Source: Octopus bimaculoides
Taxonomy: Eukaryota
NCBI RefSeq assembly: GCF_001194135.2
Contig: NC_068986.1
Coordinates: 95,678,012 to 95,742,011, forward strand
DNA length: 64,000 bases
Reading direction: 5' to 3'
A program made the translations under genes and the position numbers. Shown in pieces: positions 14,470 through 45,206 of this stretch. Position 1 is the stretch's first letter. Each line of letters opens with the position of its first letter. The notes beneath the pieces were generated by a model that did not search any database, was not told the origin of the DNA, and saw nothing but the letters and a program-made list of their open reading frames with translations.

Positions 14470-16980
14470 AAGCTCAAATTGAACATAGGATGGACTTCAG
14501 TGCCTACCCCAATGGCATGCCATGACTCTCGGCAATGGAGTTGAAGCATTGCAAAAGGCCAATAACAGCCACAGAAATACAGGATGTAATGATGGGCTGC
14601 ATGAGGAAAAAATTTCCCAGGTTTGGATGGTCTGCCCTACAAGCTTTACTTTTATATCCAAGACTTCTTTGGTGGCCTTTTAGCAAATATCTACCACAAT
14701 TGGCAGCAGAATGGGAGAATTCCTAGTTCTGTGAGCCAAGAAGCAGTGGCACTACAAAGAAAGGATTTTGAGCGGGGGGAGGGGATATGAAATAGAAAAT
14801 TTGAGGCCTATAATCCTGCTGGACGCAGATTTCAAAATTTTGGCCAAGGTGTTAGCAAGGAGTTGGCACTTGTTATCAAGGAACTGATTGGGGATGGTGC
14901 ATGTTTACAGAGGCTTTGAACAATTTGAATCAATTAAAAGCCTTTGATAGGGGTCAACTACCAGTACTTGGTAGCCATTTTTAATCCTGTTTTTTTTTTT
15001 GTTTTTGTAGCTAGATAACTGCAATATACAGCAACATCTGCTCAGTAATTCAGGTGAATGGTTACTTATTGGAATCATTCAGGATCATGTACCCAGTCTA
15101 TCAAGAGTGTCCTCTCTCATCTCTTTTGTATATACTGGCTCTAGAGCCATTACTGCAGAAATTGGAGGTGTTGAGAGGTAACCCACATGAACTAAGACAT
15201 GGGAGAACAATGCTGGCATATAGACCCAATGAGCTCTCTTCTAAAAGAATACAAGGTGGTGACAAGCAAAAATTAAGCAAGAAAAGTTAGTGGATCTGCA
15301 AATCAGCACCTGGCGATGCTGGAAGGATGGACCAGTAAAATTACTCAGGGCTTGGTTTGGTCCAGATCTCCATGTGGGGAAGAACTGGGATGAGGTGAAG
15401 AGCAGGGAAGCCAATCTCACCCAGAAATGGTTTCAGAGAAAGCTTCTCTGAAAGGTCAGGCAGAGGTGGTGAATGTGTGCATCACTTCTGTCATATATTA
15501 CCACCTGATAGTCATGCCCAGTTTACATCTGACAAAACTGGAGCACACACTTCTGCTTTCTATAGAGGGAATGTGCTCCACTGATCAGGCACTACATTTA
15601 TTGTCAACGTCTGCTAAATGGAAGACTGGGCATGTCATGGCTGCTGATGCATTTCCTTGATGGTGAGCTGGTGTGGCCATCATTTGTCTGGCTTACTTTT
15701 CTGCAGCTCATCTCTTTGAGCTGCAATCCTGGATCAAATATAGACCAAGGCAGGGTTCCTGGTACATAGAGTGTCGTCAGATGCTCAGTGTTCTGTCAGT
15801 TGGGCAATGCAGGTGGTGGAAGTTCCACTTTGGCATTCTATAGAGGGCTAGTGGCAGGTAAGTGTGATGATGTTCTCAGGGAGACTCTGGGAATTAACTG
15901 GCTGGTGTGTTCCAAATGACTTTTGGGCTAGGGCCCATAGATAATTTCCAAAAATCCCTGAGTTGGCAGGCATGGAAGTGCAGTCATTCAGGGTTTGTCT
16001 GAGATATGCACAGATTGATGAAACTATTGTCCAGTGCCCAAGTATTGGTGACTTCTAGGTTTATGTCGAATGCCTACTATCAAGTGTGTGGAGTCGCAAT
16101 GGCCCAGTGGTTAGGGCAGTGGACTCGCGGTCATAGGATCGTGGTTTCGATTCCCAGACCGAGTGTTGTGAGTGTTTATTGAGCGAAAACACCTAAAGCT
16201 CCACGAGGCTCCGGCAGGGGATGGTGGCGAACCCTGCTGTACTCTTTCACCACAACTTTCTCTCACTCTCACTTCCTGTTTCTGTTGTACCTGTATTTCA
16301 AAGGGTCAGCCTTGTCACACTGTCACGCTGAATATCCCTGAGAACTACGTTAAGGGTACACGTATCTGTGGAGTGCTCAGCCACTTGCACGTTAATTTCA
16401 CGAGCAAGCTGTTCCGTTGATCGGATAAACTGGAACCCTCGACGTCGTAAGCGACGGAGTGCCAACTCCACTCCACTATCAAGTGTAGGTCAGATCTGGC
16501 TATCAGCTAAATCCAATGTGGAGATTGTCCTGCTGCCTTTCTTTGGCCAGGGAGGGTAGGCAGTGTTCATTTGTCTGGTAGCATTAGTGGAAGAGGTTGT
16601 GTGGAGGGCCAGATTGAGAAAGCTGAAGACAGATACTTTTCTCTTTGGCCAAGTCATCAATTTTTCAAGTTTCACATGAAAAGGAAGGTAAGAGGGAAGT
16701 CCTGGCTCCCAGCAATTTTATTAAAAGGTGGGTGAATGTGGCAAGAATATATACCTGTAGATTGAAGGAAGATGATGTGGAGAAGGCATTTACCCTAGTG
16801 GTCAAGGCGGCCGTTTTGTGGGGTTTCCATGAGCAACCCTTGGAAGTCTCCCTCTCCTGAGTAATTTTTTGGTTGCTAGAATTTATATTATCGTTTTTAC
16901 TTTTTGCACACTTCTATCTATGTATCCCCACATCTAATGTTTTTTGTGAACTCGTAGTGGTAAATAAAGAAAGCATTATC
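14470..16980 (+). mobile_element. 5'-truncated Tx1-like (L1 clade) non-LTR retrotransposon, degenerate
   Basis: RT motifs LRPIILLDADFKILAKVL (about 14800), a KAFDRV-like remnant, and VNGYLLESF...QECPLSSLLYILALEPLL (15054-15290). C-terminal region and AATAAA-containing 3' end near 16965. Many stops and frameshifts. Confidence 0.75.
16088..16474 (+). mobile_element. tRNA-derived SINE inserted into the Tx1-like LINE, with 12-bp TSD
   Basis: A-box TGGCCCAGTGG and B-box-like GGTTTCGATTCCC in the head. Flanked by exact ACTATCAAGTGT at 16076-16087 and 16475-16486. Confidence 0.88.
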
Positions 16981-17448
16981 ATGAAATTTATCAAACATTT
17001 GAACTTTCAATATTTCCTATTGCTGTGAAGCTTACAGAATTCTTAAATTTTCAATATGTAATTTTGTTATGAAACCTATATAATATTTGCCTTTTTGGAG
17101 CATATTTTATCACTTTGGACTTTTTCCTGTATTCAGTTTCTTTTAAGCTTTTATCTTGCATTTTTATCTACCATTGAAAAACAAAAATATGACAGAAACT
17201 AGTACAAGATTTTAAAAATTTGTAAACTNNNNNNNNNNNNNNNNNNNNNNNNNNNNNNNNNNNNNNNNNNNNNNNNNNNNNNNNNNNNNNNNNNNNNNNN
17301 NNNNNNNNNNNNNNNNNNNNNNNNNNNNNNNNNNNNNNNNNNNNNNNNNNNNNNNNNNNNNNNNNNNNNNNNNNNNNNNNNNNNNNNNNNNNNNNNNNNN
17401 NNNNNNNNNNNNNNNNNNNNNNNNNNNNNNNNNNNNNNNNNNNNNNNN

Positions 17449-17482
<34 letters not shown>

Positions 17483-17564
17483 ATAATAATAATATTAGGG
17501 ACAAAATCCAAAATTACAGGTAAAAACTCAATTAAAAACTTCATGAACCTTGGTTCTTTTCCTT

Positions 17565-17566
17565 AA

Positions 17567-17627
<61 letters not shown>

Positions 17628-17700
17628 TATAAATATATATTTATACACACACACATATATATATATTTATACACACACACACACATATATATATATATAT
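17565..17700. repeat. Compound (TA)n/(CA)n microsatellite (representative of dozens in the window)
   Basis: Similar tracts at 321-381, 10870-10980, 11130-11375, 18620-18860, 39730-39868, 41580-41880 and 60025-60195; most assembly gaps abut them. Confidence 0.95.
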
Positions 17701-18619
17701 TTATTAGACAGCGAAAAAGGTATGTGTATGTAGAGGGGTATTTAATATACTTGTATTAACAGGAAAGAAAATTCCCAAAAAGTGAGCAGCCTGTCAACTT
17801 TATAGGTAGGGCAGGTCACAACAAAGAAAGTTAATGAGGACTGATGTCCTAAGAGAATCACACTATTTTGTCAATTTGCGCGTGTGTGTGTAATAATATA
17901 CACGCATACTTATAGAAAGATATATTTATTCATGAATGTATATAACTTCATCCATTTCCTTACTCATGTGACAAGTTTTAAGTATTACAATTTGTAACAG
18001 TAATCTTTAAGTACGATTCTTTATTTATCTATCTAGTAAAGGAAGTCAGTGATTGACTAACTTGGAAGACGTTAAGTAGTAGCCATTAAGGCGGGAGACT
18101 TCATTGTTATCACATGAGCTAATTATGGAGGGAAGGAGGACGGCTTAAAGAAAGAGGGAGAGAAAAGTAGAGAACAAATAGTTCAGAGCAAAAAAAAAGA
18201 AAAAAATACGGTAGGCGAAGGAGAAAGAGAGAGATAAGAAGTAAGGGCAGGAAATGGTGAAAAAAGAGGGACAGGGCAAGATGGTTTCTGATAAACATAA
18301 AGTTGACGAGAAGAGGGGAGAACAAGTAAAAGTTGTATAGGAAATAAGTTAAGGAGGTGAGGCGGGTATGCTTAAACGCAAAGACGAGGTGGAGAAAAAT
18401 ATCTACTCGATCACATGTATTTGTATATATACATACACACACACACTCTCACAATACTTTATTGGAGAATTCATTATTCAAAGGTCAAGAAGACCAGAAA
18501 TCCAAAGAGTACTATGTACTAGCTAAAAAATAATTGTAGAGCTAATGTTCGTGTTATTTTATTTTATAAATTAATGTTTTGGGAGTCTCGGTTTTCGCTA
18601 ATTCATGCTTTGTGTGTGA

Positions 18620-18658
<39 letters not shown>

Positions 18659-21600
18659 TGTGTGTTATACATATATATATTATATATATATACGCATAAA
18701 TATACATACATATATATATATATAATTTCGTTTTGGTGTTAACTAGAGTTTATCCCATTAAGCTCACTCAATTCCCCTTGGTGTGTGTATATATATATAT
18801 GTGTGTGTGTGTGTGTATATATGTATATGCATACACATACATGTTTGTATGTATATCCAAGAGGAAAGATGGACAAACAATTTATATTTAGATGTAAATA
18901 TTTTGATAGCGGTATCAAATATTTAGTGAATGGCTGATATAATGCATAATATGCATTATAATTTGAGCTATTCATCGAATATTTGAAACAGTTATAAAAA
19001 GTATATTTACAGGATATAAATATATGTAACGTGTCATAAATCTAGTCCTAACACTTATAACTGTTTGTCCGTCTTTCCTCTTTGATATTCTGGAATACTT
19101 AAAAGTCTGATTAAGAAGTTAAGAAATCGATCAGTCCGAGCATTAAGTTGGTGCCTATTATTCTATCCTTTCAAGAACATCTTACACACACACATATATA
19201 TATATATATTAGTATTAGAGGCACGTGGCTTTCAGTTTAGGGTGTTGCACTCAATCATAAAATCGTGGTTTCGATTTCTTGACCGAGCAATGCGTTGTGT
19301 TCTTGAGCAAATCTTTTTATTTCACGTTGCTTTAAGTTTACTCAGTTGGTAAAAATGAGTAATCCTACGACGGATCGGTGTCCTGTCCAGCGGGGAGTAA
19401 ATATATGCTACAGAATCAGGAGAGCCGGTTTTATGAGACAATAACTCGGGATGGACTTTTGATGTTTTATACATAAATGCACACACACACACACTCACAT
19501 AGATATGGTTAGAGAAATTGCATGAAAAAGGTAGGGAGAAGCGATGGAGAGGGCAATAAATACTAAAAGGGAGGAAATACTAAGATGGGAGAAGAAAGAC
19601 AAACAAAAGTGGCTTAAGAGGAAGAAAATAAATATAAAGAGAAGGGAAAGGAAATAGAGTCGAAGACGGGTTATGGGGGAAAGTATTGTGATGGCGGGAG
19701 AGACGTGAGTGTTAGAAAGAGGCGACAACAAAAATGAGAGCAGAGCTAAAGTTGTAAGAGAGAGTGTGATGGAAGAAGTGGAATGAGGAAGGGGAGGCGA
19801 TAACGAGTGTAACGTCCTCCATTGTGTGTATGTTTCATACACGTGAGTTGTGTGTGTAACACTTATAAATAGGCGCGTGTTAATTCTTGAGTTGTGTGTG
19901 TAAATTTTAAGGATATGTGTTCACCTTTCGTTTATGATTTGAAGGAGTGGAAGTGAGAATATTAAGTAGTATCAAGATTCTATGTAGACAAAGAAGAACG
20001 GGTAGCGAGTAGTTTAGGTAGTTTTTGCTAGATTTTCTTGTTTGGGATGAGTCATATTTAACAAAGCCTATAAACACTCAACGGTTGTTGCTTGTCTGTA
20101 TTTCGCTTCTCTTTCCAAAAATGTGAAGTGAAATAGAATGACTTCCCAACTATAGCAACGTTGGTTTCAATACACGATTAAAGATAAAAATTCTTTTGAA
20201 ACAAATTCAAAACTTTTCAACGATTCTTCTTGTGAAATCTTGTATTGAAACATGGATATTAGGAAGATCATTGTTTTCCAGTAAAAAACACAGCGGTTCT
20301 ATTTCACTTATTACTAGTCAACCAATTAACTCGTCGATGGCCTAATTAATCGATTTCTTAATTGGTCAACTAGTTAGCTAATAATCGTAAAAAGAAAACT
20401 AAATACAACCAGTGCATGCGTTTCATATTGAGAAAACGATCCTCCCAAATTTAGGTAATAGTGGCGTTGGAGTGGTAGGGAAGTCAGTGATATTCTGCGT
20501 TGGGAAAAGTAATAGAATTTAATAGTTTGAACAGTGAAATATGCTATTGAGCAAGGAAGTAAACAGGGCCAACGTTTCGGATGCTTATCCTTTTTCGTTG
20601 CCATCATCGTCGTTGAAGAGAGAGGGGGAAGAGAGCAGTCTTTAATATTAGGATACAAAGATGCGGACAATAGTGGTATATCGGTTTAACCCCAGGTCAT
20701 CATTGATCAAATGATCAAATGCATTCCAGTCATAACCGTCCCATCTTTTAGGGTTAACTTCTTTAAGTTATGCAGGACTTACATTATTTGAAAGGTCAAG
20801 AAGAACATCTAGAAAAGTTGGATTGCTAATATTATAGAGATTACAGAACAAAAGACGCAACAATTAATAAGAAAAACTGAAGTTAAAGATAAATGGAGGA
20901 TTGTCGGACGGACTATCCCTTACTATAAGAGTTGGTGGATACAGATACTATCTAATGCGCCCTTCTTCTTGAGTTGGAAGGGTGTGATTTAAGATACATT
21001 TCGCAACTGCGTAGAGCCCTACCCACTCATCTGCCCTCGTTGACTCGTAGTAGTGGGCACTTATTTGCTTTTTCCGCCACTAGGCAGCCTCCGTGTGCAT
21101 TGTCCTAAATTCACACTATTACAACGAATGCGTTACACATCAAGCTATGACGATGTCAAACAGGCAACTGCTCTAGTCCTAGGTGGAGACAGCCTCCCCC
21201 AAATCCCACTCACATCGGTATTTGTCTTACTTCTCAAACGCCATTGTCACGAACGGGTGTTTGCCTCACTACTCAAACACCATTGACTAGAATAATTGCC
21301 AGGTTCCCTAAACACCAATATCTCGAGAATAGTCTTTGCGTAAGCTGTCTTGGTACCATTGTTTAAATAAACTGACTGATTGTTTAGCGCCCTAAATGTC
21401 TGTCTAAAAAAAAACTAATCTTAATTTAGGATGCTCATCTACAAGATCGAACACCCAACCCTAAATTGGAGAGGGGGATGGGAAGAAACTAAGAGCGGTA
21501 AAAATATTGACGGTGATAGTAGTAGTAAGTGGTGGTGGGAGAAGGAGTATTCAGAGTGGTGGTGCTATTTCTGTATTCATTGATTGTAGTAGAAGCAACG

Positions 21601-22928
21601 CATGTTTTGGGGGAAGTTGTAGTAAAAAAAAAAAAAAGAAGCAAAAGATGGATGGTAAGAATAAAAGAAATATGAGAGAATAAATGGTGGCGGGAAGAGG
21701 AAAAGGAGGAGAGGCTGGTTAACAAGGACAACAGATGACGTCATGCCTATCTTAGTTCCTTTTGTTAAATTTCAGTTTATCAATTCAATTAATTTTTCAA
21801 GCACAAAATCACAATAAATTTAAATATCGAAACAAAGCTGAGAATAATATATTTATGGCTGTAACGAAAGTTACGAGTGGCTACAGGGCTTCAAGTACCC
21901 TTGTGGTGCTTATAACTGAAATAAATAAAAGAAACCTCCAGAAAATTGCTTTATAAAAAATAATGATAATTACTCTAATTATAATAGTTATATCTGTTTA
22001 CAAATGCCGTACAAATTATTAACTCACACTGAGATAACTATTTATTTACATGGTTCCATAGATGAATAGGAATTAATAGTTTCTGGTTTGAAGTGAAACG
22101 AGTCTATTGTGTTGTAATTCATGGTTTTTATTATTTACAAATTGAAAACTTTAGTGATGTCTTTTTCAAAAGGTGTTTATTTTATACAGCATAATTTTTG
22201 AATGGGATTGCAAATGTGCACGAAGTGTGAACGTTTGCATTTTTACGCACGCATACATGGATATTTATTTCGATCAGAGTAGTAGTTTTATACCCCCCCC
22301 CAAAAAATCCTAATTTATTCCACTTTAAGAATTCTCATTGATAAAAATAATATAGGTTGTTTCAATTTGTCTACTATTTTTGTAAGTTTAGCTTCCATGT
22401 CCAAGGCTCCTCATTTTATCCCTATATACTAGTCATTTTGTTTTTTATAATCGCTTACATGCCTTTTCCGTTTCATATATACATTACCCTATCATTCTAT
22501 CACTCTTTAGTCGTCACCTCTTTCTTTCTTGCTATATATGTCGCTCGATCATCAGCATCATGACATGTCCCCCTCACACTCTCAATTTATACATACTGTA
22601 AATACCCCAATTACTTCGGTTCTTGATTTTATGCGACTGGTAGTTAGACATTAAAATTCGAATACTGCGTATAAGAATTCGATTTACTGCGGTATAATGG
22701 TATGTATAAGAAATGAAAAATAATGTAGTATAATTTCTCCTTCAGCTTCTTTTCCTTCTTTCAACTGCTACCGAATGTATTGCTAATGATTTGTTATTAT
22801 ACATAGCTACATCTGCATATCATATATATGTATTTTGTTTTTCGGAAGCTGGTGTCGAATTAATTATAAACCATGTTATTCAGAGTTACGTTAATCGGGA
22901 GTTTTTCCCTAACCCTCAAGTTATTATC

Positions 22929-23744
22929 ATGAGTACTAAAGAAGAAGAGAGTACCACCAGTACAAGTGGTGGAAGTGTTGAGAAGAAGAAAAGAAAAGTT
23001 GTAGGACTGGAAGAGAAATTAGCAATAATTGATAAATATGAAAGCGGTATTACTAAAGCAAAGATTAGCCGAGAACATGCTATCGGCGAATCAACAGTGC
23101 GCAATATTATTCAGAACTCGAAGATTTATAAAGAAAAGGGACAAAGTGCTGCTTCATCGTCGAATTTCCAAACAACAAGAAACCGAAGCTCTACAATGAT
23201 TGAAATGGAACGTCTATTGTCAATTTGGATCGAAGACTGCAATCAAAAGAACATTCCTTTAAATACAACGGCCATTAAAAAGAAAGCTGTCAGTTTGTTT
23301 GGAGCTGTCCAAAGAAAACGGAAAGAAGAAAAGAAAACCGAAGCGGAAACTAACGAAACATTTTTTGGAAGTTCTGGATGGCTCGTCAGGTTTAGAAAAC
23401 GATCTAAAATGCATAACCTTGGAATTGTAGGGAAAAGCGCGTGTTCGGACGATAGTGCGGCAACTAGACATCCCGCCGAATTTAAACAAATTATTGAAGG
23501 TGCTAGTTGTGATGATCAAGATGAAGCTATGTCGCAAATGAAAGAATTCTCAATTAATGAAATCGATGCAATTTTAAAATTTTTTGAAGATGGAAAGCAG
23601 ATGATAATGAGTTCAGATCCAAATGTAGAAAGAGCGATGCTAGTCAGTAAACAAATTGAAAAAGCACTCAGTTGCTATAGGGCTTTGCGTAAAGAGAAAA
23701 GATTAAAACAAACATCCCTTTTACAATATTTAAAAAAACAATAA
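22929..23744 (+). CDS. Tigger/pogo (TIGD/CENP-B-like) transposase-derived protein lacking the DDE domain, 271 aa, intronless
   Basis: ATG at 22929. N-terminal HTH (LEEKLAIIDKYESG...GESTVRNII), second CENP-B-type HTH (MERLLSIWIEDCNQKNIPL...FFGSSGWLVRFRKR), then a direct jump near 23501 to a TIGD1-like tail (DPNVERAMLVSKQIEKALSCYR...QTSLLQYLKK). No stops or frameshifts; AATAAA at about 23780. Confidence 0.8.
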   Translation: MSTKEEESTTSTSGGSVEKKKRKVVGLEEKLAIIDKYESGITKAKISREHAIGESTVRNIIQNSKIYKEKGQSAASSSNFQTTRNRSSTMIEMERLLSIWIEDCNQKNIPLNTTAIKKKAVSLFGAVQRKRKEEKKTEAETNETFFGSSGWLVRFRKRSKMHNLGIVGKSACSDDSAATRHPAEFKQIIEGASCDDQDEAMSQMKEFSINEIDAILKFFEDGKQMIMSSDPNVERAMLVSKQIEKALSCYRALRKEKRLKQTSLLQYLKKQ

Positions 23745-26700
23745 ACACATTTATTTATTTGCCTTTGCTAATGTAAGTCAATAAAACTAATTAAAACATC
23801 GGTATGATTTTTACACGTTATATATTCAAATACTGCCGTGTCCTTCGCGACATGCCTTGCGTGACTGATGTACTCGTGTATGTCTAACATTTTTTTTACA
23901 CATGAACGTTATCTCTGGTATATATATATTCTTCCACAAATATCCCTTAAGATGTTTTCCTCTTATATCATTATATTAAACTTTACTGATGCTCCACCGT
24001 CTCCTCTTTCCACACACATCTATACAGATATTTCTCCCGCGCTTTGTCTATGCTTACTACTACTACTACTACATTACATTGGTCATCTTTGTCTATAGTG
24101 GACAGAAGCCAAAAATCTGTCAGTAGTCACTCTCCTGTTAACAAGAATAGTAACAGGTATAACAAGCAACATAATCCAACGATGGGATTTTACAGATTTG
24201 CTTGGTCTTATGATATGTATATATGCGTATGCGTGTGTCCATTAACTCAATACTGTCTTTGTAAAATGAAGGAATCGTTTAAAGTTATAAAACATCTATC
24301 ATAAATTCTATTCCCGTCTAGGATGCAGTATCTTAACATCAAACAAATTTAGTATTTGACTGGCATTTTATTTTATCGACCGTCCCAGAACTTTGAAAGT
24401 TGACACAAGCAGAGTATGCAATTAGATGGGCAGTGACCCCGTTTTAGCCCACCAGGTTATCTAAGTGGCATTCCTTGATTGTACTTTTCTAAAATTGGTC
24501 CTTTGTGCCCCAAATATTTAAAGATTTTCAAATAAACTATAACGCTTTTCCTACAAATTCTACTGGCCAATTTTGTCTTTCATCCTTTCAGGATTAATAA
24601 AATAAAGTACTAGGCAAGTACTGGAGTCGATGCAATCAACATACACTGTCCTCTAAAATTACTGCACTTGTTGAAAATTTGTAATCGACATTATATTTTT
24701 ATTTAGTTGATTGCTAGAAACATTTATGTAAAAATATTAAAAGCAATTATTTAGTTGGTCATTTGACAGGAGAATTTGTCACCTTTTTACATTTTAAGTT
24801 CAAATCTCACCAAGGTAAGATTTATATACATGGGTGTATTGCATTTCCTTTTCTTGATACTGCATGGTAGTTGTAAATGAGCATCACTGTCACAGAAGCA
24901 GTGTCATTCATTTCTAATATTCTGCAAAAACAAGGCAGCAAGCTGACAGAAATGTTAGCACACCAGACGAAATGCTTAGTGGTATTTTGTCTGTCTTTAT
25001 GTTCTGAGTTCAAATTCTGTTGAGGTTGACTTTGCCTTTCATCCTTTCAGGGTCGATAAATTAAGTACCAGTTGCATACTGAAATTGATCTAATCGACTG
25101 GCCCCCCCCTCCCCCAAAATTTCAGGCTTCATGCTTAGAGCAGAAAAGAATATTCTGCAAAAACGTCTGGCTATGGGAAAATTCAACCTTGCTTGGAAAC
25201 AGGTGAGAGTTGGAGACAGGGAGGGCAGCCAGCCAAAGAAAATTTACTTCAATAAACTACATCCACTCAATGCATGCATAGAATAACAGACATTAATGAT
25301 AATATGTACTGAATATATATTTTGTAAAATTACACAATGATAACAGGATAGGCATGCATACCCTTAATTGAGCAAGGAAAAGAGAAGTCAATTAACCAGC
25401 TATAGTTACTCCATTAAAGACTCAGCAAATTCAAAAACTGAGGGGAATGATATCTAGATGAGAATGACTCTTATTGAGAAAGTGGCTGTGTAGTAAGAAG
25501 TTTGCTTCCCAACCACATAGTTCTGGGTCCAGCTCAACTGTGTGGCACCTTGGGCAAGTGTCTTCTACTATAACTTCAGGCTGACCAACTCTTGTGAGTG
25601 GATTTGGTAGGTGGAAACTGAAAAAAGCCAACTGTCATATGTATGTGTGTGAGTCTTTGTCCTCACCCACTGCTTAACTGATGTGGGAAGTTTATGTCCC
25701 ACAACTTAGCAGTTCAGCAAAAGGGACTGACAGAATAAGTATGAGATTTCACAAAATGTACTGGGGTCAATTTGTTTGACACAAATAATAAAAGATAAAT
25801 ATCTTCATTATATTTAGGTAAGATGAAATAAAAGGGGCAGCTGGTGTATTGGTTGGATCTGTTGGAGAAGGTAAAGATAGTTTTAATACTCCAAACATAA
25901 GACTTTTGTCAGAAGCAACATATTCTAATCAAGTTAACACAAGCCAAAAGACAGCCTCTACAATGTCATTCAATCTGCTAGAAATTTACCGCCTTCAAAT
26001 TACCAAAAAAGGGAAGGACATATTAGATAATGAAATGCTATATATATATATATACTATATCCAAAAATAAATAAGATGGAACGGTTGTCAGTGGAACCAT
26101 TCTTTAGTTATTGTCTGTTCAATCATGGCTAAGTCAAGACTGAACAACAATATAAATCATCATCATGAACTTGTTAGAAACAACACCAAAATCTTCAAAT
26201 CACGCTTTACTGTCTTAAAAACGGAATTAGAAAAACAGAGTTGTCACGGCTTGGCAAGTCTTTGATCTTAGGTCTCTTCAATTAGATCCGAACTTCGGAA
26301 TATACATGAGAAATCGAGATTTAATTTAGTTCACATACACAAGGGAGAAAACTCTGTTATAAATTTTAAACTTCATTGCTATATTTTACTGAAGAATGTT
26401 TTCACAACCATTCATAGAAAACTTGTCGTGCAGAAAGGAGCTAATCAAATATTTAGGAGGAATAACATATACTTCCATTTTCCCCCAAATTCTTCATGCT
26501 ACAATCCAGGATCATAGTAATTTAAAAAGACAGGGCTTAGTTTTGTACTGTACAGTTTTAGGCAGATGATATGCTTCAGCTCCACTGTAGATAGTATTTA
26601 GAATAGCTTTGAATAGTGGATGCAGCTACCAGCATCCCTTGACACACTGAAATATATATAATGAAACTTCTCTAGTCTCCTTGTATACATACAGAACCAT

Positions 26701-29398
26701 GTGCAGTCCTCAGCAAAATCCATGCTGACATGGGTTGTATGGACTTGCAATACAGAATGACTGCATGTGTTTAAATCCTGTATCATTTCAATGATGAAAC
26801 CTCACTCCTAGCTGCTTTTACCACAATTACTTTCACTATTAATTCTCAAAATTTTTTCATGTAGCATTCACTTACATAACATGTCTAACCCTCATGGTAG
26901 TTTCCACTGACTTGCATCAGCTGAGAATTTTGCTATCACTTGTTAAGGTAAATCTTATGAGCCCCGCCAAAAAGAACTTATACACGGTTGCTTGATCTAC
27001 TAGAAATAGCAATCAAATCTTCCTTAAATCAAATACTAGTAAAATCTTTAAAAAAAAGTAAGTTGACATATGTATTCATAATAATGTAGTTCTGTTTACA
27101 TTGTATTTTAAACAGAAACAGGATGATCACATTTGGAACACCTATGGTGTTAGGTTGGTTCAATAAGAACTGACCTGAGGATAAAGTCATCATTGTCTTC
27201 CATGCTGGCATTGGTTGAACAGAGCTGGTAAGGCTGGGAGGTGCACCAGGCTCCATTGTCTATTCTGGCATGGTTTCTATGGCTGGATGCGCTTCCAGAT
27301 GCCAACCACTCGGTGTACTGGGTGCTTTTAACATGGCACCAGCATGATTTAAATTGAATTAAATTTTAAAAAATTGAAAACCATTTCCAGTTTATTTTAA
27401 TTAAATATTCCATATAAAACAAACAAATAATATACAAAACTTTATAGCTGCCACTTTGCTTTCCCTCAGAGAGAAAAGTATTTTGAAATTTACCCCTTGT
27501 TTCATGTAATGAAGTTTGTTCATGAGTGAGTGGGTGTAATGAAGTTTGTTCATGAGGACAGTCGCTTACTGCAATTATGAGAAAAACAGAAAAAGTTGGT
27601 AGATGGCTAACATCATTTTCCATTAATGCCGGTTTTCCATGCTGGTATGAGTTGGACTGACATAATTATGGTTTTTTTTATGTTCAAATCCTTCACCAAA
27701 GACAGTTGGTAGGCATAATAAGATGAAGCTTGTATTTTCTGTTCTGTGAAAATCCAGTTCTATCTTCATGGTCTGAAGTTCTTATTACTTTTCAAGAATT
27801 GAAATTTCTACAATGAGAAAATAAATACATAAAAGTAATATGAAATAAAATGTAAAACACATCAACAACTACAAAAACAAAAAGTAATATAAAAATAGTA
27901 TAATTTGGTCTGTAAACAGTTATGTGTCTGATTATCTTCAGTCATGTACAACACAACACCCTCACCTCCTTAAAGTTACTATCAATACTAGATAATTTCT
28001 GATGATCTCTCATCTATAACATTGTAAAACTATATCATTATGGTTAGAAATTGGACTGTGGAGTTGGACTTAAAAGCAATTAATGGGTTACTGAAGTCAA
28101 GGTTGATAAAAATGTACTGACTCCAAGTTCAGCTAAATATAAATAATATAATGTATTAAAATTTCCAATTTATATAGTATAGGCACAAATGTAGCTGTGT
28201 GGTTAAGAAGCTTGCTTTACAGTCACATGGTTTTGGGTTCAGTTTCACTGTGTGACATCTTGGGCAAGTATCTTTTACTATAGCCCCAAGTTGACGAACG
28301 AGTGAGTGAATTTGGTAGACAAGAACTGTGTGGTTTGTATGTGATTTATGCGTGTGAGTGCACATGTGTATCTTTGTGTTCATCTTCCTACCATTGACTG
28401 GCAATTAGTGTTGGTTTGTTTATGTCCTCATAACTTAGAAGATTTTAGTCAATTTAGGATTTCTTTCATTTAACCTTTATTCAATAGACATAATATTTCT
28501 TCAATAAATTCTAGAGGAATAAACTGTTCAATATTTTACAATTTTTATTTCATTTAATGTACAATTTCATGTTAACAGTTACTCAAATTTTATGTTGAAA
28601 CTATGCGTTAATCTTGAAATCAAAGACTTATATATCTAATTGACTTCATTTTTTCTAAATGGTAATTTGTTAAGTAGTTTTAACTTTGACTTTCTTTTAT
28701 AGTATTCTTACATCTTATTTCTTTTATATCCTCTTACCCTTTGATAAACATGGCCACTTTTTTTAATTTCTAAGGTTTATTTAAAGCCTAATTGCTTGCA
28801 AGTTTTTTTACAAATACAATAAAAAACAACCAAAGTAGCATAACTATAGGCCTTTAAACCCAAACTTAAACAAGTTAGGATTCCAAAACGTGTCCTGATG
28901 ATTCATGTTGACCTTGTTTATCATATGCTCTCAATCAGTATAAGAAATTTATGATTAATTTAATTACAAGTAGGGAAGTTGAATTCATTGGCATCATAAA
29001 TTGATGAGTCTTATGGAGCGACTCCATAACCCTGCTGAGAAAATACTTCAGTTGCTGATCTAGATTTACATGACAAAACAGGTAAATGTTTTGTTGATGT
29101 CAAATGCAACATCACTGTAACTAATATGAGAATATCCTTGACACACACCTGAAGAAGTGTCCTCATTTCTTGGTTGTCCAATTACTTCAGTCTGTTTAGT
29201 CCCATTCAAAAGATTTATGATCAAAAGATGTTCCAACTACAATATCATTCTATTTTATTTTCAGACACAACGTATCTAAGACTATTCTCCAATATAATAA
29301 TAACAACAACACAGCTCTTTAGCAGCCCATGTGCAGTAGCAGTTTTTGTGGCTAGCAAAGATATAAGCCTTAAACATAGTAACAATAAAGTTTGAACT

Positions 29399-29765
29399 GC
29401 AGGAGTGGCTGTGTGGTAAGTAGCTTGCTTACCAACCACATGGTTCTGGGTTCATTCCCACTGCGTGGCACCTTGGGCAAGTGTCTTCTACTATAGTCTC
29501 GGGCTGACCAAAGCCTTGCGAGTGGATTTGGTAGACGGAAAACTGAAAGAAACCCGTCGTATATATGTATATATATATGTTTGTGTATCTGTGTTTGTCC
29601 CCCCAACATCGCTTGACAACCGATGCTGGTGTGTTTACGTCCCCGTAACTTAGCGGTTCGGCAAAAGAGACCGATAGAATAAGTCCTGGGGTCGATTTGC
29701 TCGACTAAAGGCGGTGCTCCAGCATGGCCACAGTCAAATGACTGAAACAAGTAAAAGAGTAAAAG
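29399..29765 (+). mobile_element. tRNA-like-headed SINE, family B (GCAGGAGTGGCTGTGTGGTAAG...; tail GAAACAAGTAAAAGAG)
   Basis: Best-preserved copy. Degenerate copies at about 6660-7010, 25480-25790, 28185-28440, 34540-34710 (-), 35440-35580 (-), 44620-44790 (-) and 52957-53270 (-). Confidence 0.75.
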
Positions 29766-30562
29766 CACTTTGATGCTCCCTCTTTAACATTCATGTTAAT
29801 CTTAACCTTTAACCTTAATCTTCAACATTCATTATACTCTCACTTATACAAGCAAACAAAGGAATTTCCTTGGGGTTGTTTGATTTCTTTGTAGTTTGTA
29901 CCGAGTGAGAAGGAATGGCAGCACTCAATGAACTTTACAGGATTTCATAGACCAATAAGGACCAGGCAAAGGAAAAACAACTCACACAACTTGAAGGCTA
30001 CTGAAGTAGGAAGTAGCACTTCAATATTAGGCGCAAAGATCTGGTTCTAATTCTGTGAACCTAAGGGCCAGATGACGAGGCTGATGTTAAATCAGGTGAC
30101 ATTAAATTTATCATCTAAGAAATATGTACAGACCATCAAAGAAGATTCCATTTATAAACTGTGTCATCTTGGGACTATAGTGGAAGACACTTGTCCAAGT
30201 TGTTGCAGAGTGGCATCAAACCTAGAACCAAGTAATTGCAAAGTGAATTCTTAACCACATAGCCATATTTGTGCCAGAAATAGCAGCTACAATTCTTTCA
30301 ATCCATACCCTCCCTTCTTAAATAAAGTAGGAGACATCAAGCAATGTGGTCCCTTGTATAAAAAAAAGAGAGGACAGTCACACCTAGGACACCCCTGATC
30401 ATATATATGCTTGATCAGAGAATTGATCTGGGACCAAGCAAAAACAACAAAAACTCAGACATTGTTGTAAATTCTAAAAGAAGCAATAAAAAAATATAGT
30501 GAAAATAAATAAATAAATAATTGTAAATTTACCAATTTAAGAACTGGTTTCTCTACCAAAAT

Positions 30563-30598
30563 TCAATCTTCTGGTTCTTCATCTTCATCTGGAACACA
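30563..30598 (-). CDS. RAD1: RAD1 exon 8 (last coding exon, CVPDEDEEPED*)
   Basis: AG acceptor at 30599-30600, phase 0, TGA at 30563-30565. Matches the CxPDE acidic end of RAD1 proteins. Confidence 0.88.
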   Translation of the reverse strand, partial: CVPDEDEEPED

Positions 30599-30789
30599 CT
30601 GCATTCCATGATGAGACAAAAAAATATCAAATAAATAAATAAAAATTGTCAGTTTGACAATTAGAATTGGTAACTCTTCCATTTTAACATCCACCACTTT
30701 AAATTTTAGCCTCTCCCCTACCATTCTCTCTCAATAACAAACATAACTCAAATAAGAACCGTCCAACCTAACCCATGCTGGCATGGCAG

Positions 30790-31180
30790 ATGGCCCTCCA
30801 AGGGGCACCAGAGGAAACCCCACAAAACCAGTCATCCAGACCACTAAGGCAAGTGCCTGCTTCCTGTTCTCATCTTCTACAGGTGTATGTTCAGAGTAGG
30901 CCTATTCATTCAGACCATACTTGCCACTCATCCACCTTTCAACAAATTTGCTAGGAGACAATGCTTCCTTCTCCATCCTCATTTTGCTTTTCAAGTAAAA
31001 CTTGAAAAGGGTTATGAAGGTTTGGCCAAAGAGAAATCTGACTGTTTTCAGCCCTTTCAATCTTGTCCATCATACAATCTGTTTCGCCAAAGCCACCAAA
31101 GAGATAAAGGCTGCAGTCTCTTCTTAGCCAAAGGAAGGTGGTGGGACAATCTTTATGATGCACTCTCGTTCCTTTCTTCA
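30790..31180 (-). mobile_element. 3' fragment of the same Tx1-like family as 14470-16980, in the last RAD1 intron
   Basis: The reverse complement aligns by eye to about 16520-16840 (e.g. TTTCTCTTTGGCCAA and TTTTGTGGGGTTTCC shared). Confidence 0.65.
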
Positions 31181-31599
31181 AGAGAGAGAGAGAAAATACA
31201 AAATTGATACTATTGTCATCACTAAGGATACTAATAAGAGGTTTAATTAAAATGAATTGACAAAGCATACAGAAATCCAGTTAGCATTTATTATACACCA
31301 CATCTGCTTCTTCATGTAACTTATTAATTATGACACCATCATTGTCTTTTACTGTGGATTATTTTGTTTTGTTTTACTCCAAGAAACAGTATGCACTTAT
31401 AGCTTTCTTCTATTAGTCGTCACCACATCCACTGATGAACCATTTGTGTGTACATAAAATAAACTGAAAATGTGGAAGCTGTTTAAAAGACTAAGAACAA
31501 AGTCATCAATCTTTGCGTTATTTAAAATTACTCTGTATGGATTTCCAGTGGCTGGAGAGAGGCAAGTTAGGCATGGTTTGTTCGATGTGCCATGTTAAC

Positions 31600-31890
31600 T
31601 TAAAAGATGTCTTTGAGGACAAGAGAGATGTGACAGTGGCTAGGTATCAAAGATATATCTAAAAGCAACGTCTAAAAGACTTGAAAGATACAGTTATGTG
31701 GTATGGACATGTAAACATGAATACATGAGGTTATAATGAGTTAATGCTGGAAGGTAACTGTGACAGAGGTAGATCAAGAAAGACATGATGGCTTTACACC
31801 AGAGAGCATTGGGCCTCAAAGATGAGATGATGCAGAATTATAAACCCATTTAACATATGGTAACATGAAAAATGTAGATGTTAACAATGG
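31600..31890 (+). mobile_element. Degenerate RTE LINE 3' fragment
   Basis: WYGHV and RGRSRKT-like remnants resembling the 9330-9960 copy. Confidence 0.45.
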
Positions 31891-32499
31891 TAAATATGCT
31901 GCCATTCTTTAATCCCAAGTTAGCTGTGATTGAGCAGAATTATGACTAAGGACATTTCAGCCATCATCATCCTACTTCTTTTTCAGATATAGCATATCTA
32001 GGACTACATTATCCAATGTGTACACTTTTTTTCAGGATAATATAATGCAATTTGAAAGAGATTTGATTGCTTTTTCAAACAGGTCAAATGCTCATATAGG
32101 AGCTCCTCATATGTGCATGATTGTACATATACAAGAATAATATACATTTGAACAAACAGGTAAAAATATCAGATGAGTGTTGAACTTGTAATCTGAGCCA
32201 TAACACAGTCTTTTTCTTCTCAACAACAGCAATGATAACCCTTTTTACTTTCTACTATAGGCACAAAGTGTAAAATTTGGGGAGAGTCGGGTAGTTGATT
32301 ACATCGATCTCAGTGCCCAACTGATACTTATTTTATCAACCTCAAAAGAATGAAAGGTAAAGTCGGCCTAGGCAGAATTTGAACAGAGTATAAAACCAGG
32401 ATATATTCCATGAAGAATTTTGTCTGGCATGCTAACAACTCTGCCAGCTTGCAGCCTTAACAACAGCAACATTAAGAAATCAATGAAGGGAAAACTTAC

Positions 32500-32644
32500 A
32501 TAAAACTCCACAAAACAGACTTGTCCATCTTCATTTTTTATCATAAACTGGAGAGAAAGGAAGCCACGTCTGTCAACCCTGATGGAAACACGTGAAGAGA
32601 TGGCCAGTGCTTTCACTGATGGCTTTAAAAGTAAGATTTTATAC
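32500..32644 (-). CDS. RAD1: RAD1 exon 7 (R|YKILLLKPSVKALAISSRVSIRVDRRGFLSLQFMIKNEDGQVCFVEFY)
   Basis: 145 nt with AG/GT boundaries; closely matches the RAD1 C-terminal region (RGFLSLQYMI..EDGQICFVEYY in human). Confidence 0.95.
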
Positions 32645-33004
32645 CTGAAAAAGAAAATTTTTGAAAATTCAGAATTTACAATTCTGGAATATTCTTTAAC
32701 TAGTTTCAGACTTGGCAAACATACTGGGGCAGCAACTTTAAATGGTTTTAGAGGCAATTATATCCCTAGCTCCTGTTACAGTATTTTGTCTGGTACTCAT
32801 TTCATCAATTTCTCTTTATCAAATGGCAAAGTTTTCCTTGGCATAAAGAGAGATAATATGATATCAAAATATCATAAGGTACATTTCTTAAAAATCGGAG
32901 TAGAGGCCTTGGTCTCAAGACCACTCTACAAACTGAGGTTGGGGGTAAGCAAGGGCATGCTCCCTGTAGAAAATCCAGCTCCAAAAAATACATGCATACA
33001 TATA

Positions 33005-34334
33005 CAGGATGATTCGTAAGTAACTCCCTATTCTAAAATAATTATAATTTATTCAAATGCTGTAATATGTTTTTCAATTTTTGTGTGTATGTTACTTAAT
33101 GTGTGGCAATTAAACCTATGCTTTTGTTTTCTTTTCAGATCTGTTATATGAATTTGGTTTTTAATCTTGTTAATTTGTTTGAAATTTCAAAGCCCTACAA
33201 AAATGGCTGGACGTCTTACTGTACAGGAACGCGCCCAGATAGCTGCACGTTACGAAGTTTGGAGATCCATTGTTCAAGTGCAAAGATGGTAGAGAACCAT
33301 TAAGGGAAGACATGCTCAAATTGACCCAAAGACAATCAAGAATTGTCATGCAAAACTCATGACTACAGGATCTGTGACTGATACTCAAAGAAGCGGTCGC
33401 TCTTCCAAATTCAGAGACCCTGAGGTAGTGCAAGTTGTTCAAAAAATGTTTACCCATAGCCCACAAAAGTCAATTCGACAAGCAGCAAAAGAAAGTGGGT
33501 TCTCGTTTCGCTGTGTACGTAATGTGCTTAAAAATGAGCTTAAATGGCGTGCTTGGAAGCCACACTACTGCCAAGCACTCTCTGCCGAAGACTGCGACAT
33601 TCGTATGGAGTTTGGAGAGATGATGTTGGCTTGGTTTAGAGATTGGCCCGATCTCTTAAAAAATATTCTCTGGAGTGATGAAGCTGTATTCCACATAGGT
33701 GGGTTTGTAAACCGTCATAACTGCCACTACTGGGCGGGAGAACATCCTTGTGTTACCAGTGAAAAAATGCAGAATTGACCCAAGATAACGGTATGGTGTG
33801 GAATGACTTCGACCATGAACGCTGAAAGGTACCTCACTATGTTGAGAGATGAAATTTGGCCAATTATCAGTGCTTGGGACAATATTGAAGATTTAATTTT
33901 CATGCAAGATGGTGCTCCTCCACACTTTGCTATTGTTGTTCGTGAATGGCTGAATGCCCAATTTCCTGGAAAATGGATGGGTCGTCGTGGTTCACACGAA
34001 TGGCCAGCCAGAAGTCCTGACTTAACACCCTGCGACATTTTCCTTTGGGGTTGGTTGAAAGAACAAGTCTACTCAACCAAACCAAGAAATCTGGAAGAAC
34101 TTGAAGGGAGACTACGTGAAGTTATTAGTTCCATCCCACAAAAGTTTCTTGTGAAATCAGTTGATGCGGTTCATGGTCGACTTGAAAAGCTGGTGGCGAA
34201 TGATGGTGCCCATATTGAATTTTAAATAAAAGTCCATGTAATATACTTTCTTCTCATATTCATTAATTGGAGAAATTATACTTCAAAAATATATTAGTCA
34301 TTTTAGAATAGGGAGTTACTTTCGGATCACCCTG
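33005..34334 (+). mobile_element. DD41D (rosa/Visitor-type) Tc1/mariner transposon, full length, two nonsense codons
   Basis: 35-bp TIRs CAGG(A/G)TGAT(T/C)CG(T/A)AAGTAACTCCCTATTCTAAAAT (3 mismatches) with TA on both flanks. Single frame 33203-34225 with TAG at 33290 and TGA at 33776. Triad WSDE / QDGAPPH / SPDLTPCD with 41 residues between the second and third D. Confidence 0.92.
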
Positions 34335-41881: not shown

Positions 41882-44095
41882 GTTAGGTGTGATGTACAGA
41901 AATTAAATATTGAGAAAATTGGACAGGAGAGCTAGGAAGAAGGGGAGATAATAAAATACTGGTGATCCCAAAACAAAAGTGCGGGTGCGTGTGTATGTGA
42001 GAGTGTGTAAGTGAGAGTGTGTAAGTGTGTGCATGTGGATAGTGGCTAGTGACTTTGATGTGTTGATGTGTAAACGTGTATGTCAGTAATGTGCGTGGTG
42101 TTGGTACTGGGAAGTGGTCATTGCTAGTATGTGTGGAGTGGTGGTATGTGGAGGTGTGGGGATGTGAGGGTGGGGTGTAGGTCTGGGGTGAGGATGTGGG
42201 AGTGGAGGTAGGGTATGTGGGAGTGGCATGTGTGGTGTGGATGGAGGATGGTATCAATGAAGAGAGAAGGTAGGTAGGAGTGAACAGAAGAAGTAGGTGT
42301 CAGATGAAGAGAGGAGAGGAGGGGAGTCAGATGAAGGTGAGAGGACAGTTGAGCCCATGTGGCAGAAAGGAGCAAAGAGAGAATATTAATTCTTGTTCAT
42401 GGCAAATGCGTGTCGAATGGCCCCTGTGCAAAGACAATTTTAACACAGACAGGTGTTGTAATAAATAACTGGTAGAGCAGAAATGGTGCAAGATAGGGTT
42501 GTCATTGCTGAGTCTAATGTCTCGGAGGTGCTCCGTGAATCAGTCAGCCAAGCAGCATCCCATTTGACCCATGTACAGAGAAGGGCATGAGAAACAGTAA
42601 ATGACGTTGCTAGAAGTGCAGGTAAAGGAGTCAGTGATATGATAGGGACGATGATGGGTGTCTGTGAGGATGGTGGTGTTGGAGAGGTAGGGGCAAGTGC
42701 GGCAGCGTGGGCGGGAGCAAGGGAACGAGTCACATTGAGAGGTGGGGTTAGGGAAGAAACTGTGGACCAGGAGGTCACGTAGGTTGTGGGCTTGTTTGAA
42801 AGTGGGAAGGGGTAGGTTGGGGAAGATGTGTGAAATGGAGGGGTCGGACTGGAGTCGCCGGAAGGCTCAAAGAATGGTGCATTGGAGAGGCAGGGTGGAG
42901 GGGTGGTAGGTGAGGGAAAATAGGAGATGGGCAATGGCAGGGTAGGTGCAGGGAGAGAGAGCAGAAGCATGGTCCATGGAACATGCTCTGGCAAGGGGAT
43001 ATCCATGAAGGATGAAGTGGCAAGCCATGAGTTGAGACTGAGTTTCAAAGTCATGGTTGTCACTGCAGAGCCTGTGCAGATGGAGGAATTAGGAGTAGGT
43101 GATGGAGAGCTTGGTGTGGGTACGGTGGGAGGAGGAGAATTTGAGTTATGAGTCTGAGTTGGTGTGTTTGTAGTGAGAGTGGAGTTGTATATGTTTACTG
43201 AAATATCAAGAAAGGAGATGGAAGTGTTGGAAATAGTGCAGGAGAATTCGAGAGCAGGATGGAAGGATTGGACAAAAGAGAAGAAGGATTCTAGTTGTTC
43301 ACGGGAGAAGAGTGAGGTTGCACCGATACAGTCATCAATATAACGACCATATAGTTTGGAAGTGGGACCAGTGAATCTTCAAAATATTTGGGCCTCAACA
43401 TAGCCAAGGAACAGATTTGTATAGTTGGGACACATTCTCATTCTCATGGCCACTCCTGAGACCTGTTGGTAAAACTCCACTGTGAACGAGAAGTAGTTGA
43501 GGGAGAGAACAAGTTCAGCCAGACAAAGAAGTGTGGATGTGTCAGGTTGGGGGTTGGGTTGAAGGTCTAGGAAGTGGCTGAGGGCAAGAAGTCCTTGGTT
43601 GTGTGGGATCACCATATATAGACTCTTGATATCAAGAGTGAAAAGACGTTTAGAAGGTCCAGGAGGGAAGGAGAAAGAGTTGAAAAGATGGAGAGCATGG
43701 TTAGTGTCATGGATGTGGGAAGGGAGGGAAGCCAATAGGGGGGCAAGGACACGGTCAAGGTATTTTGAGACCAGTTCTGTGGGGCAGGTACAGGCGGAGA
43801 CGATGAGGTATCCAGGGTTGTTGGGCTTGTGGATTAAGGGAAGGAAGTAAATGGTGGGGGTACCTGGAGTGCGGACAATGAGTTTGGAAGTGGTGAGAGG
43901 GAGATGAGAGGAGGAGATGAGGTCATGGATAGTGGAGGACACAGTGTGTTGGTAGCTAGGTGTGGGATTGGAGGGCAGAGGGCAATAGAAGGAGGTGTCT
44001 TGAAGTTGGCAGATAGCTTCAGCCTTGTAGAGGTCTGCACGCCACACCACCACAGCTCCACCCTTGTCGGCCGGCTTTATGATAATGTCCTTGTG
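41880..44095 (-). mobile_element. Penelope-like element (RT plus GIY-YIG endonuclease), 5'-truncated and frameshifted
   Basis: IIIKPADKGGAVVVW, YFLPLIHKPNNPG, LFTLDIKSLY, GVAM and YGRYIDDC RT motifs. GIY-YIG-like SNVIYCFSCPSLYMG...TEHLRDIR...EQELIFSL at about 42400-42630. Pyrimidine-rich 3' region. Confidence 0.88.
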
Positions 44096-44231
44096 ATGTC
44101 ACACACATACATATACATATAAATACATATACAGCAAGACACGAAACATATACACAAACACAAAGATGCATAGAGAAAATACACAACCAACACCCACAAA
44201 TCAAGATGACTAAAACAATAACTCTACTCAC

Positions 44232-45174: not shown

Positions 45175-45206
<32 letters not shown>

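Follow-up and report, generated by a model that had tools for sequence, protein, structure and literature searches.

The vertebrate genes TIGD1–7, JRK, CENP-B and POGK/POGZ keep, as far as is known, a DDE_1-like domain, which is usually inactive, and the KP repressor of the P element is an internally deleted transposase, KP elements being mobile, multi-copy and flanked by terminal inverted repeats (TIRs). Drosophila cag (CG12346) is derived from pogo, has lost its DDE domain by internal deletion, encodes a PCNA-binding protein and shows a ratio of nonsynonymous to synonymous substitution rates (dN/dS) of 0.195 (PMC4231638, PMC13548663). The pogo transposase itself carries a PCNA-interacting protein (PIP) box, conserved also in Tigger, and both pogo and CAG bind PCNA (PMC5371812, PMC4231638); Tigger elements are known in Mollusca and Porifera (PMC7386202). 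A survey of 2026 describes a "DNA-binding-module pathway" in the domestication of Tc1/mariner/pogo transposases and lists six criteria (PMC13548663). Here, we describe a single-exon gene of 271 codons in a stretch of 64,000 nucleotides of Octopus bimaculoides (NCBI RefSeq GCF_001194135.2, contig NC_068986.1, positions 95,678,012 to 95,742,011), hereafter called the window. Its product combines the two DNA-binding domains and the C-terminal module of a Tigger transposase, with the catalytic domain missing between them. We read it as a lineage-specific, molecularly domesticated transposase gene of the Tigger type (pogo superfamily) and give this reading, with the origin and mechanism proposed below, a probability of roughly 0.78. 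Coordinates refer to positions in the window, and the gene and its parts lie on the plus strand (Table 1).

Gene structure and the excised catalytic domain

A preliminary description of the window, made from the sequence, had reported a clean open reading frame (ORF) of 271 codons with two CENP-B-type helix-turn-helix (HTH) domains, a jump to the C-terminal module of the transposase at 23501, and a poly(A) signal behind it. The ORF was verified from the ATG at 22929 to the TAA at 23742–23744; this ATG is the first past an in-frame stop, and the reading frame is closed upstream. Among the ORFs of the window without N runs it is the second longest, and it is not a chance event, since the likelihood of an ORF of this length (34% GC, about 7% stops per random codon) was roughly estimated at 1e-9 per start. 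A Pfam search returned both HTH domains, as had been expected, and no DDE_1 in the 271-aa protein even at E ≤ 1; the poly(A) signal proved to be present twice, as AATAAA at 23740–23745 and 23780–23785. The octopus protein has the bipartite arrangement of CENP-B_N and HTH_Tnp_Tc5 that characterizes the CENP-B family, and its sole solved relative is the DNA-binding domain of CENP-B (PDB 1hlv; sequence E 3.5e-5; Foldseek E 1.5e-4, probability 1.0). An AlphaFold2 model built from an alignment of 29 sequences (mean predicted local distance difference test score, pLDDT, 75.6) contains two confident helical DNA-binding domains (pLDDT mostly 82–95), followed by a disordered segment over the deletion scar (below 50 at aa 165–178 and 191–203). 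The KKKRK cluster at the start of CENP-B_N (aa 19–23) is a possible nuclear localization signal, and the TATA-like TTATAAA at 22864–22870, which sits within a well-conserved upstream block (22578–22928), is a possible core promoter.

The deletion was delimited against the closest full-length relative recovered, a Tigger transposase of 557 aa (P0155) on a metagenome contig (L008; ENA ERZ23491219, scaffold DHAR22-1_..._52744) with a complete DDE_1 domain (aa 224–406, E 5e-47, Pfam). At the protein level, residues 8–197 of the octopus protein align with residues 2–190 of P0155 (66% identity) and residues 195–271 with residues 478–557 (59%); at the DNA level, positions 155–750 of L008 correspond to 22911–23515 of the window (76.5%) and positions 1631–1859 to 23523–23742 (72.5%). 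Relative to L008, the octopus gene lacks about 880 nt (about 290 codons) in frame, with the junction at 23516–23522, that is, 5–7 codons further downstream than first placed; apart from the position of the break, the earlier sequence description was correct, the jump to the C-terminal module included. It had also noted that in TIGD1/Tigger proteins this point lies just before the first catalytic Asp (NxDET), with roughly 300 residues normally following. In the alignment, NVDETG of P0155 begins 5 residues past the break, and the lost stretch comprises NVDETG, the whole of DDE_1 and the acidic region behind it. The DDE_1 domain of an autonomous Tigger/pogo transposon is thus missing both as a protein match (E ≤ 1) and as about 880 nt of DNA, and the octopus protein, by its sequence and model, can neither cut DNA nor catalyse transposition.

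Orthologues were found in two further species. That of O. vulgaris (P0154; 270 aa, 97% identity; GenBank CAI9724799.1) has been auto-annotated as "transposable element-derived 1-like [Octopus vulgaris]"; that of a third octopus-like species (P0001; 269 aa, 92%; Logan assemblies SRR11869384/390/391) comes from a species known from its Logan contig alone. The deletion junction is identical in all three. A collapsed deletion in the assembly, or an ORF that is one exon of a larger, spliced, DDE-bearing gene, could be suspected because the window comes from a draft assembly with gaps and includes several N runs. Assembly collapse, which the preliminary description had named as a possible refutation, is ruled out because the same junction occurs in independent assemblies, namely the chromosome-level assembly of O. 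vulgaris and the Logan contigs of three runs. A hidden larger gene is rejected as well: the frame is closed 5' of the ATG, the upstream indels between species do not come in multiples of three, a single exon of 813 nt makes up the gene model of O. vulgaris, and no DDE_1-like sequence was found near the ORF by tblastn. An artefact of either kind can practically be dismissed.

Selective constraint, synteny and the remains of the transposon

On chromosome OX597819.1 of O. vulgaris, the corresponding locus (L007) runs colinear with 14481–32850 of the window (at least 18 kb) at 85–95% identity, and in this comparison an unbroken colinear block (19194–28877) surrounds the ORF, with a Rad1 gene downstream. 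At about 30600–32850 (L007 18039–20813, minus strand) the window contains sequence orthologous to a portion of the Rad1 gene model of O. vulgaris (Pfam Rad1). With 94–95% identity, this region is the best-conserved part of the syntenic block and offers an anchor by which the Tigger-derived gene could be dated. For the Logan contig, colinearity extends over 22829–24669. Because the flanks are colinear in both O. vulgaris and the Logan contig, the compared loci are orthologous and not transposed copies, and the Tigger insertion at this locus predates the split of the three sampled octopus species. The orthologues are 92–97% identical to one another versus at most 65% to any transposase, and form, judged by identities, a clade of their own.

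Between O. bimaculoides and O. vulgaris the ORF shows 97.2% identity and a single indel of 3 nt, while the flanking bins of 400 nt are 90–96% identical with 2–8 indel events each (dS 0.08–0.09; flank divergence about 6%). This level of divergence matches that of the two species at the locus of a second Octopus gene (P0006, see below), in line with O. bimaculoides as the source of the window. With the third species the ORF is 94.6% identical and shows the same lone in-frame indel; identity in the 3' flank is 82–88%, with gaps at 120 positions in 925 nt. Pairwise dN/dS over the whole ORF in the three species is 0.15–0.31, and its distribution along the protein is uneven: 0.06–0.09 for both HTH domains (aa 19–160), 0.05–0.14 for the C-terminal module (aa 201–271), and about 0.4 or more for the linker (aa 161–200), where one pair gave a very high value that is uninformative because there is almost no synonymous change. 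Residues 188–195 all vary among the three species. In a null simulation, the observed number of substitutions was placed at random with the observed transition fraction kept (20,000 runs). The two modules contain 8 nonsynonymous changes among 32 substitutions versus 23.2 expected, a count that no simulation reached (0/20,000; P < 5e-5); the linker contains 15 among 19 versus 14.0 expected, which fits the neutral expectation. The coding capacity is intact in three species, strong purifying selection acts on the DNA-binding and C-terminal modules, and the linker carrying the deletion scar is about neutral. The preliminary description had proposed domestication and had named synteny and dN/dS as checks; the locus is syntenic in O. 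vulgaris and dN/dS lies well below 1 in both retained modules, and with the two HTH domains without DDE_1 and the shared deletion this core proposal is supported.

Few hallmarks of a transposon remain. The preliminary description had noted no TIRs flanked by TA. This stands for the 3' side, where no TIR was detected (the reverse complement of the candidate 5' TIR scored downstream within the shuffle null), and has to be amended for the 5' side, where a decayed TIR-like remnant lies at 22596–22621, 330 nt upstream of the ATG. Its local alignment to the 3' TIR of L008 (reverse complement) scores 40 versus a maximum of 38 in 200 shuffles, which is marginally significant; TACTGCGG-like subterminal motifs follow downstream at 22612, 22663 and 22685, and the reconstructed TIR motif contains …ATACCCCGGTTACTGCGG…. 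The remnant is the sole such site in the window, as found with a search pattern designed from the same site. O. vulgaris has lost ten bases of the remnant, which is thus not being maintained. A generic search for an inverted-repeat pair bracketing the ORF gave low-complexity or chance pairs only, and the 5' and 3' untranslated regions of L008 gave no significant alignment to the flanks in the window. The TIRs with TA target-site duplication of an autonomous Tigger/pogo element are therefore lacking, and TIRs or target-site duplications are, but for the marginal 5' remnant, absent as in a domesticated gene; decayed or absent TIRs would be the pattern expected of an immobilized old insertion. 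No local family of miniature inverted-repeat transposable elements was evident, the window showing no enrichment of a TACTGCGGT-like motif (4 occurrences versus 2.2 expected).

As to copy number, no second copy of the ORF was found in the window by tblastn or blastn. Above 66% identity, searches of 5.8 billion protein clusters and an exhaustive search of 1.84 billion representatives returned the orthologue cluster only, and look-ups of the clusters of short fragment matches revealed no cephalopod transposon copies. The searches of the 5.8 billion clusters were word-indexed and incomplete: the first gave 5 matches and overlooked a second Octopus relative (P0006), and a profile search was then made. 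Transposon copies are often not gene-called and hence are under-represented in protein collections.

An ordinary non-autonomous deletion derivative of Tigger, with an ORF open only through youth and no host function, has some points in its favour: internal deletions sparing the two ends are characteristic of pogo/Tigger (PMC4231638), many DDE-less relatives with other breakpoints exist (P0164 of the same subfamily among them), and a 5' TIR-like remnant is present 330 nt upstream. The compared copies are, however, orthologous within at least 18 kb of synteny; purifying selection is strong and limited to the two modules; no frameshifting indel has entered the ORF, although its flanks gather indels; 56 neutral substitutions would yield no stop codon with a probability of about 0.11; and the TIRs are decayed or absent, with no paralogues in the window or in the protein searches. 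We consider such a derivative quite improbable and retain the reading as a domesticated gene.

Putative function, parallel genes and other features of the window

The C-terminal module is predicted as a two-helix hairpin, of which D230, R235 and Y250 do not vary in 29 relatives. Its 77 residues gave no Pfam match, CENP-B_dimeris included, at E ≤ 10 (one chance match aside), and the hairpin gave no significant fold match in the PDB with Foldseek; a CENP-B-like dimerization domain was rejected on both grounds. Among the last residues lies the degenerate PIP-box-like motif QTSLLQYL (aa 261–268), which the three species share unchanged, a single synonymous substitution having occurred at codon 263. 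In the same place P0155 and P0164 have canonical PIP boxes (QTTLLQYF and QASLLKYF, respectively), and among 74 relatives with the C-terminal module 16, the nearest full-length relatives included, have a box that is canonical by the looser pattern Qxx[ILMV]xx[FYW][FYW], and 31 a canonical box or one that is aliphatic at position 8. QTSLLQYL departs from the canonical Qxx[I/L/M]xxF[F/Y] (PMC5371812) in having Y at position 7 and L at position 8.

From the sequence and the model, we infer the following course of events and function. The Tigger copy that inserted at this locus was probably internally deleted, and non-autonomous, already on arrival; after the in-frame loss of about 290 codons its terminal repeats would have decayed and the host would have retained the remaining ORF. 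The product would be a nuclear, sequence-specific DNA-binding adaptor, whose two HTH domains may recognize Tigger-TIR-like sites (originally the Tigger TIR or a subterminal motif) and whose C-terminal hairpin and tail may serve self-association or bind a partner, possibly PCNA, like the pogo transposase and Drosophila CAG. The likely outcome would be repression, or chromatin- or replication-linked regulation, at Tigger-TIR-like sites, not transposition.

Two versions of this function were weighed. As a domesticated host factor in transcription, chromatin or replication, of the kind of CAG or CENP-B and independent of transposons, the gene would join pogo-derived CENP-B, Abp1/Cbh of fission yeast and Drosophila cag, which act in this way (PMC4231638, PMC5371812); selection also acts on two independent genes that combine the same modules, and the PIP-like tail is conserved, although the motif is non-canonical and a CENP-B dimerization domain was not detected. 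This version is tentative, at somewhat less than even odds. As a domesticated KP-type repressor, the protein would sit on the TIRs of Tigger elements that are active, or would poison the transposase of these elements by way of the C-terminal module that both have in common. It retains precisely the TIR-binding domain and the C-terminal module common to the full-length transposase, it is 59–66% identical to an intact Tigger transposase, and Tigger elements are present in Mollusca (PMC7386202). No full-length cognate from octopus was recovered, however, the nearest ones being from metagenomes; no further TIR-like sites of the family occur in the 64-kb window; and selection has continued even though the family of the element seems to have died out or to be absent. 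We regard the repressor version as unlikely. Because no cognate full-length octopus Tigger and, in the window, no related TIR sites were found, we lean weakly towards the host factor.

Several points weigh against the domestication as proposed. The evidence on copy number comprises the 64-kb window and incomplete, word-indexed protein searches, and these protein searches yielded metagenomic full-length Tiggers as the nearest ones and none from octopus, which tells against the repressor version. The putative function of the gene is read from its sequence and a model; with no Pfam or PDB match for the hairpin, dimerization or PCNA binding is conjecture, and the PIP-like motif is off the canonical consensus, with L for F/Y at position 8. 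Conservation is shallow: the microsynteny with O. vulgaris spans at least 18 kb, Rad1 included, but the three species are close, all being Octopus-like with dS of at most about 0.14.

Two further DDE-less genes are relevant here. The second Octopus gene (P0006, O. vulgaris, CAI9715745.1; P0156, O. bimaculoides, XP_014779662.1) is a single exon for 350 aa at orthologous loci in the two species; its product shares 44–50% identity with the window protein, and no further Octopus relative turned up in the protein searches. It has the canonical PIP box QMTLDKYF and breakpoints unlike those of the window gene, and is under selection (dN/dS 0.16–0.22, zero indels, 11 of 13 amino-acid changes in the linker). 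The other is a marsupial single-exon gene (P0002–P0004; 323–324 aa; "uncharacterized protein LOC105749892") with breakpoints that are different again. It lies at colinear loci in the American Gracilinanus and the Australian Sarcophilus (dN/dS 0.14–0.17, dS 0.23–0.26) and looks like an undescribed parallel domestication. Both genes consist of the same modules as the window gene (two HTH domains, linker, C-terminal hairpin, and a PIP or PIP-like end); their identity to it is only 35–50% and the deletion breakpoints differ, and we therefore take them for separate deletions and domestications. Many more DDE-less relatives with both end modules are present in databases, and part of this recurrence is expected, since DNA transposons that are deleted internally retain their two ends. 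That selection acts at the host level on three loci nevertheless suggests that the pair of modules is useful, with the Tigger C-terminal hairpin and PIP tail as a suggested functional unit (candidate roles: self-association or PCNA binding). A general class of transposase-derived, clamp-tethered DNA-binding regulators, with the two Octopus genes, the marsupial gene, cag and possibly Trichuris as candidate members, is a doubtful extension, for which we would give rather long odds; alternatively, the module combination is a mere by-product of transposons deleting their middles.

The patchy distribution of this Tigger lineage (octopus, marsupials, metagenome) hints at horizontal spread. A fragment of the closest full-length Tigger was observed in GCA_022599525.1 (contig JAHZIM010035481.1, L004). 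The contig probably belongs to a host or eukaryote and was binned with a bacterial genome, because the prefix of the assembly accession occurs in a paper on sponge-associated bacteria.

Table 1 Positions of the Tigger-derived gene, its parts and flanking signals in the window, and of related DDE-less genes at other loci
Feature	Position	Strand	Details
DDE-less Tigger-derived gene, single-exon ORF, 271 codons + stop	22929–23744	+	ATG 22929; TAA 23742–23744
CENP-B_N helix-turn-helix, aa 19–64	22983–23120	+	Pfam PF04218, E 7e-8; pLDDT about 82–95
HTH_Tnp_Tc5, second DNA-binding domain, aa 92–159	23202–23405	+	Pfam PF03221, E 1.2e-10; pLDDT mostly 84–93
Fast-evolving disordered linker with deletion scar, aa 161–203	23409–23537	+	pLDDT <50 at aa 165–178 and 191–203
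C-terminal two-helix hairpin, aa 209–229 and 233–270, motif DPNxER...CY	23553–23738	+	AlphaFold2 pLDDT 95–97 for aa 210–250
Degenerate PIP-box-like motif QTSLLQYL, aa 261–268	23709–23732	+	Same in three species
Two AATAAA poly(A) signals	23740–23745 (overlaps stop codon); 23780–23785	+	Conserved in all three species
TATA-like TTATAAA, about 60 nt 5' of ATG	22864–22870	+	In alignments of all three species
Candidate decayed 5' TIR of ancestral Tigger, CTGTAAATACCCCAATTACTTCGGTT, preceded by TA	22596–22621	+	Alignment to L008 3' TIR
Second Octopus DDE-truncated gene	L009 4001–5053 (O. vulgaris); L010 4001–5053 (O. bimaculoides)
Marsupial DDE-less gene	L005/L006 6001–6972 (Sarcophilus); L011 3001–3975 (Gracilinanus)

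Elsewhere in the window, an intronless ORF of 351 aa on the minus strand (444–1499) with two RRM_1 domains (E 2.5e-34) and a Gly/Tyr-rich tail is hnRNP A/B-like and may be a retrogene or a single-exon gene. An intronless ORF of 173 aa on the plus strand (51334–51855), a GNAT acetyltransferase (Acetyltransf_1, E 3.9e-17) that by eye we take to resemble the N-terminal acetyltransferase NAA20, is a possible retrocopy. Two adjacent mariner-type transposase ORFs of 139 and 140 aa (33359–34225, plus strand), with the frame broken between them and a weak DDE_3 match in the second (E 1.4e-4), are a decayed transposon; of the heavily decayed transposons reported around the gene, this broken element was recovered, the surroundings having been examined in part. 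The segment at 42001–44100 is a compositional outlier (GC 0.49 and GC skew +0.56, versus about 0.35 and about 0 elsewhere) with long minus-strand ORFs of 207 and 224 aa without Pfam match, possibly a retroelement remnant. A short interspersed repeat of about 100–200 nt, with copies 70–80% identical, occurs at 24554–24660, 45035–45181 and other sites, as well as at L001 1695–1787; the same repeat is present in the flanks of both related species and forms, together with a (TA)n(TG)n microsatellite, the ends of the Logan contigs.

Comparison with known systems

The octopus gene resembles the KP repressor in that an in-frame internal deletion strips catalysis and keeps the DNA-binding and (here putative) multimerization parts; it differs in that its locus is fixed, syntenic and without TIRs, and the superfamilies are unrelated. 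From the vertebrate Tigger/pogo genes it differs in the DDE_1-like domain, kept there and wholly absent here, and by the lack of orthology; its best named full-length relatives are marsupial TIGD1-like proteins (45–46% identity). With TIGD1–7, JRK, CENP-B and POGK/POGZ it shares the combination of CENP-B_N and HTH_Tnp_Tc5, a stationary locus and purifying selection (PMC7386202). The likeness to the full-length Tigger transposases P0155/P0173 is closer (66% identity in the DNA-binding part, 59% in the C-terminal module) and extends to the start codon region, KKKRK, DPNVERAM...LSCYR and the terminal Q..LLQY; these transposases differ in having a complete DDE_1 (E 5e-47), the canonical QTTLLQYF and a recognizable 3' TIR.

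Drosophila cag is like the octopus gene in having lost DDE_1 through an internal deletion and in being under purifying selection; cag is a low-copy host gene, and PCNA binding of CAG has been established experimentally. It represents an independent event in another phylum and in a pogoR-like lineage rather than Tigger; it has no recognizable PCNA motif, whereas the octopus gene clearly retains a PIP-like motif and the C-terminal hairpin; and it is old (genus-wide), whereas the octopus gene has so far been found in three close species. Four of the criteria of the 2026 survey are found at the octopus locus, namely homology to a transposase, no TIRs, constraint and a separate clade (PMC13548663). 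The novelty implied by the preliminary description was too high, as DDE-less host genes derived from pogo have been described (PMC4231638, PMC13548663) and CAI9724799.1 is in GenBank. Given cag and the described DNA-binding-module pathway, the octopus gene is a new lineage-specific case and no new category; it adds a clean, recent, lineage-specific transposase domestication for the transposon-rich genomes of cephalopods, with an unusually legible pattern of selection in which the retained modules are constrained and the deletion scar drifts.

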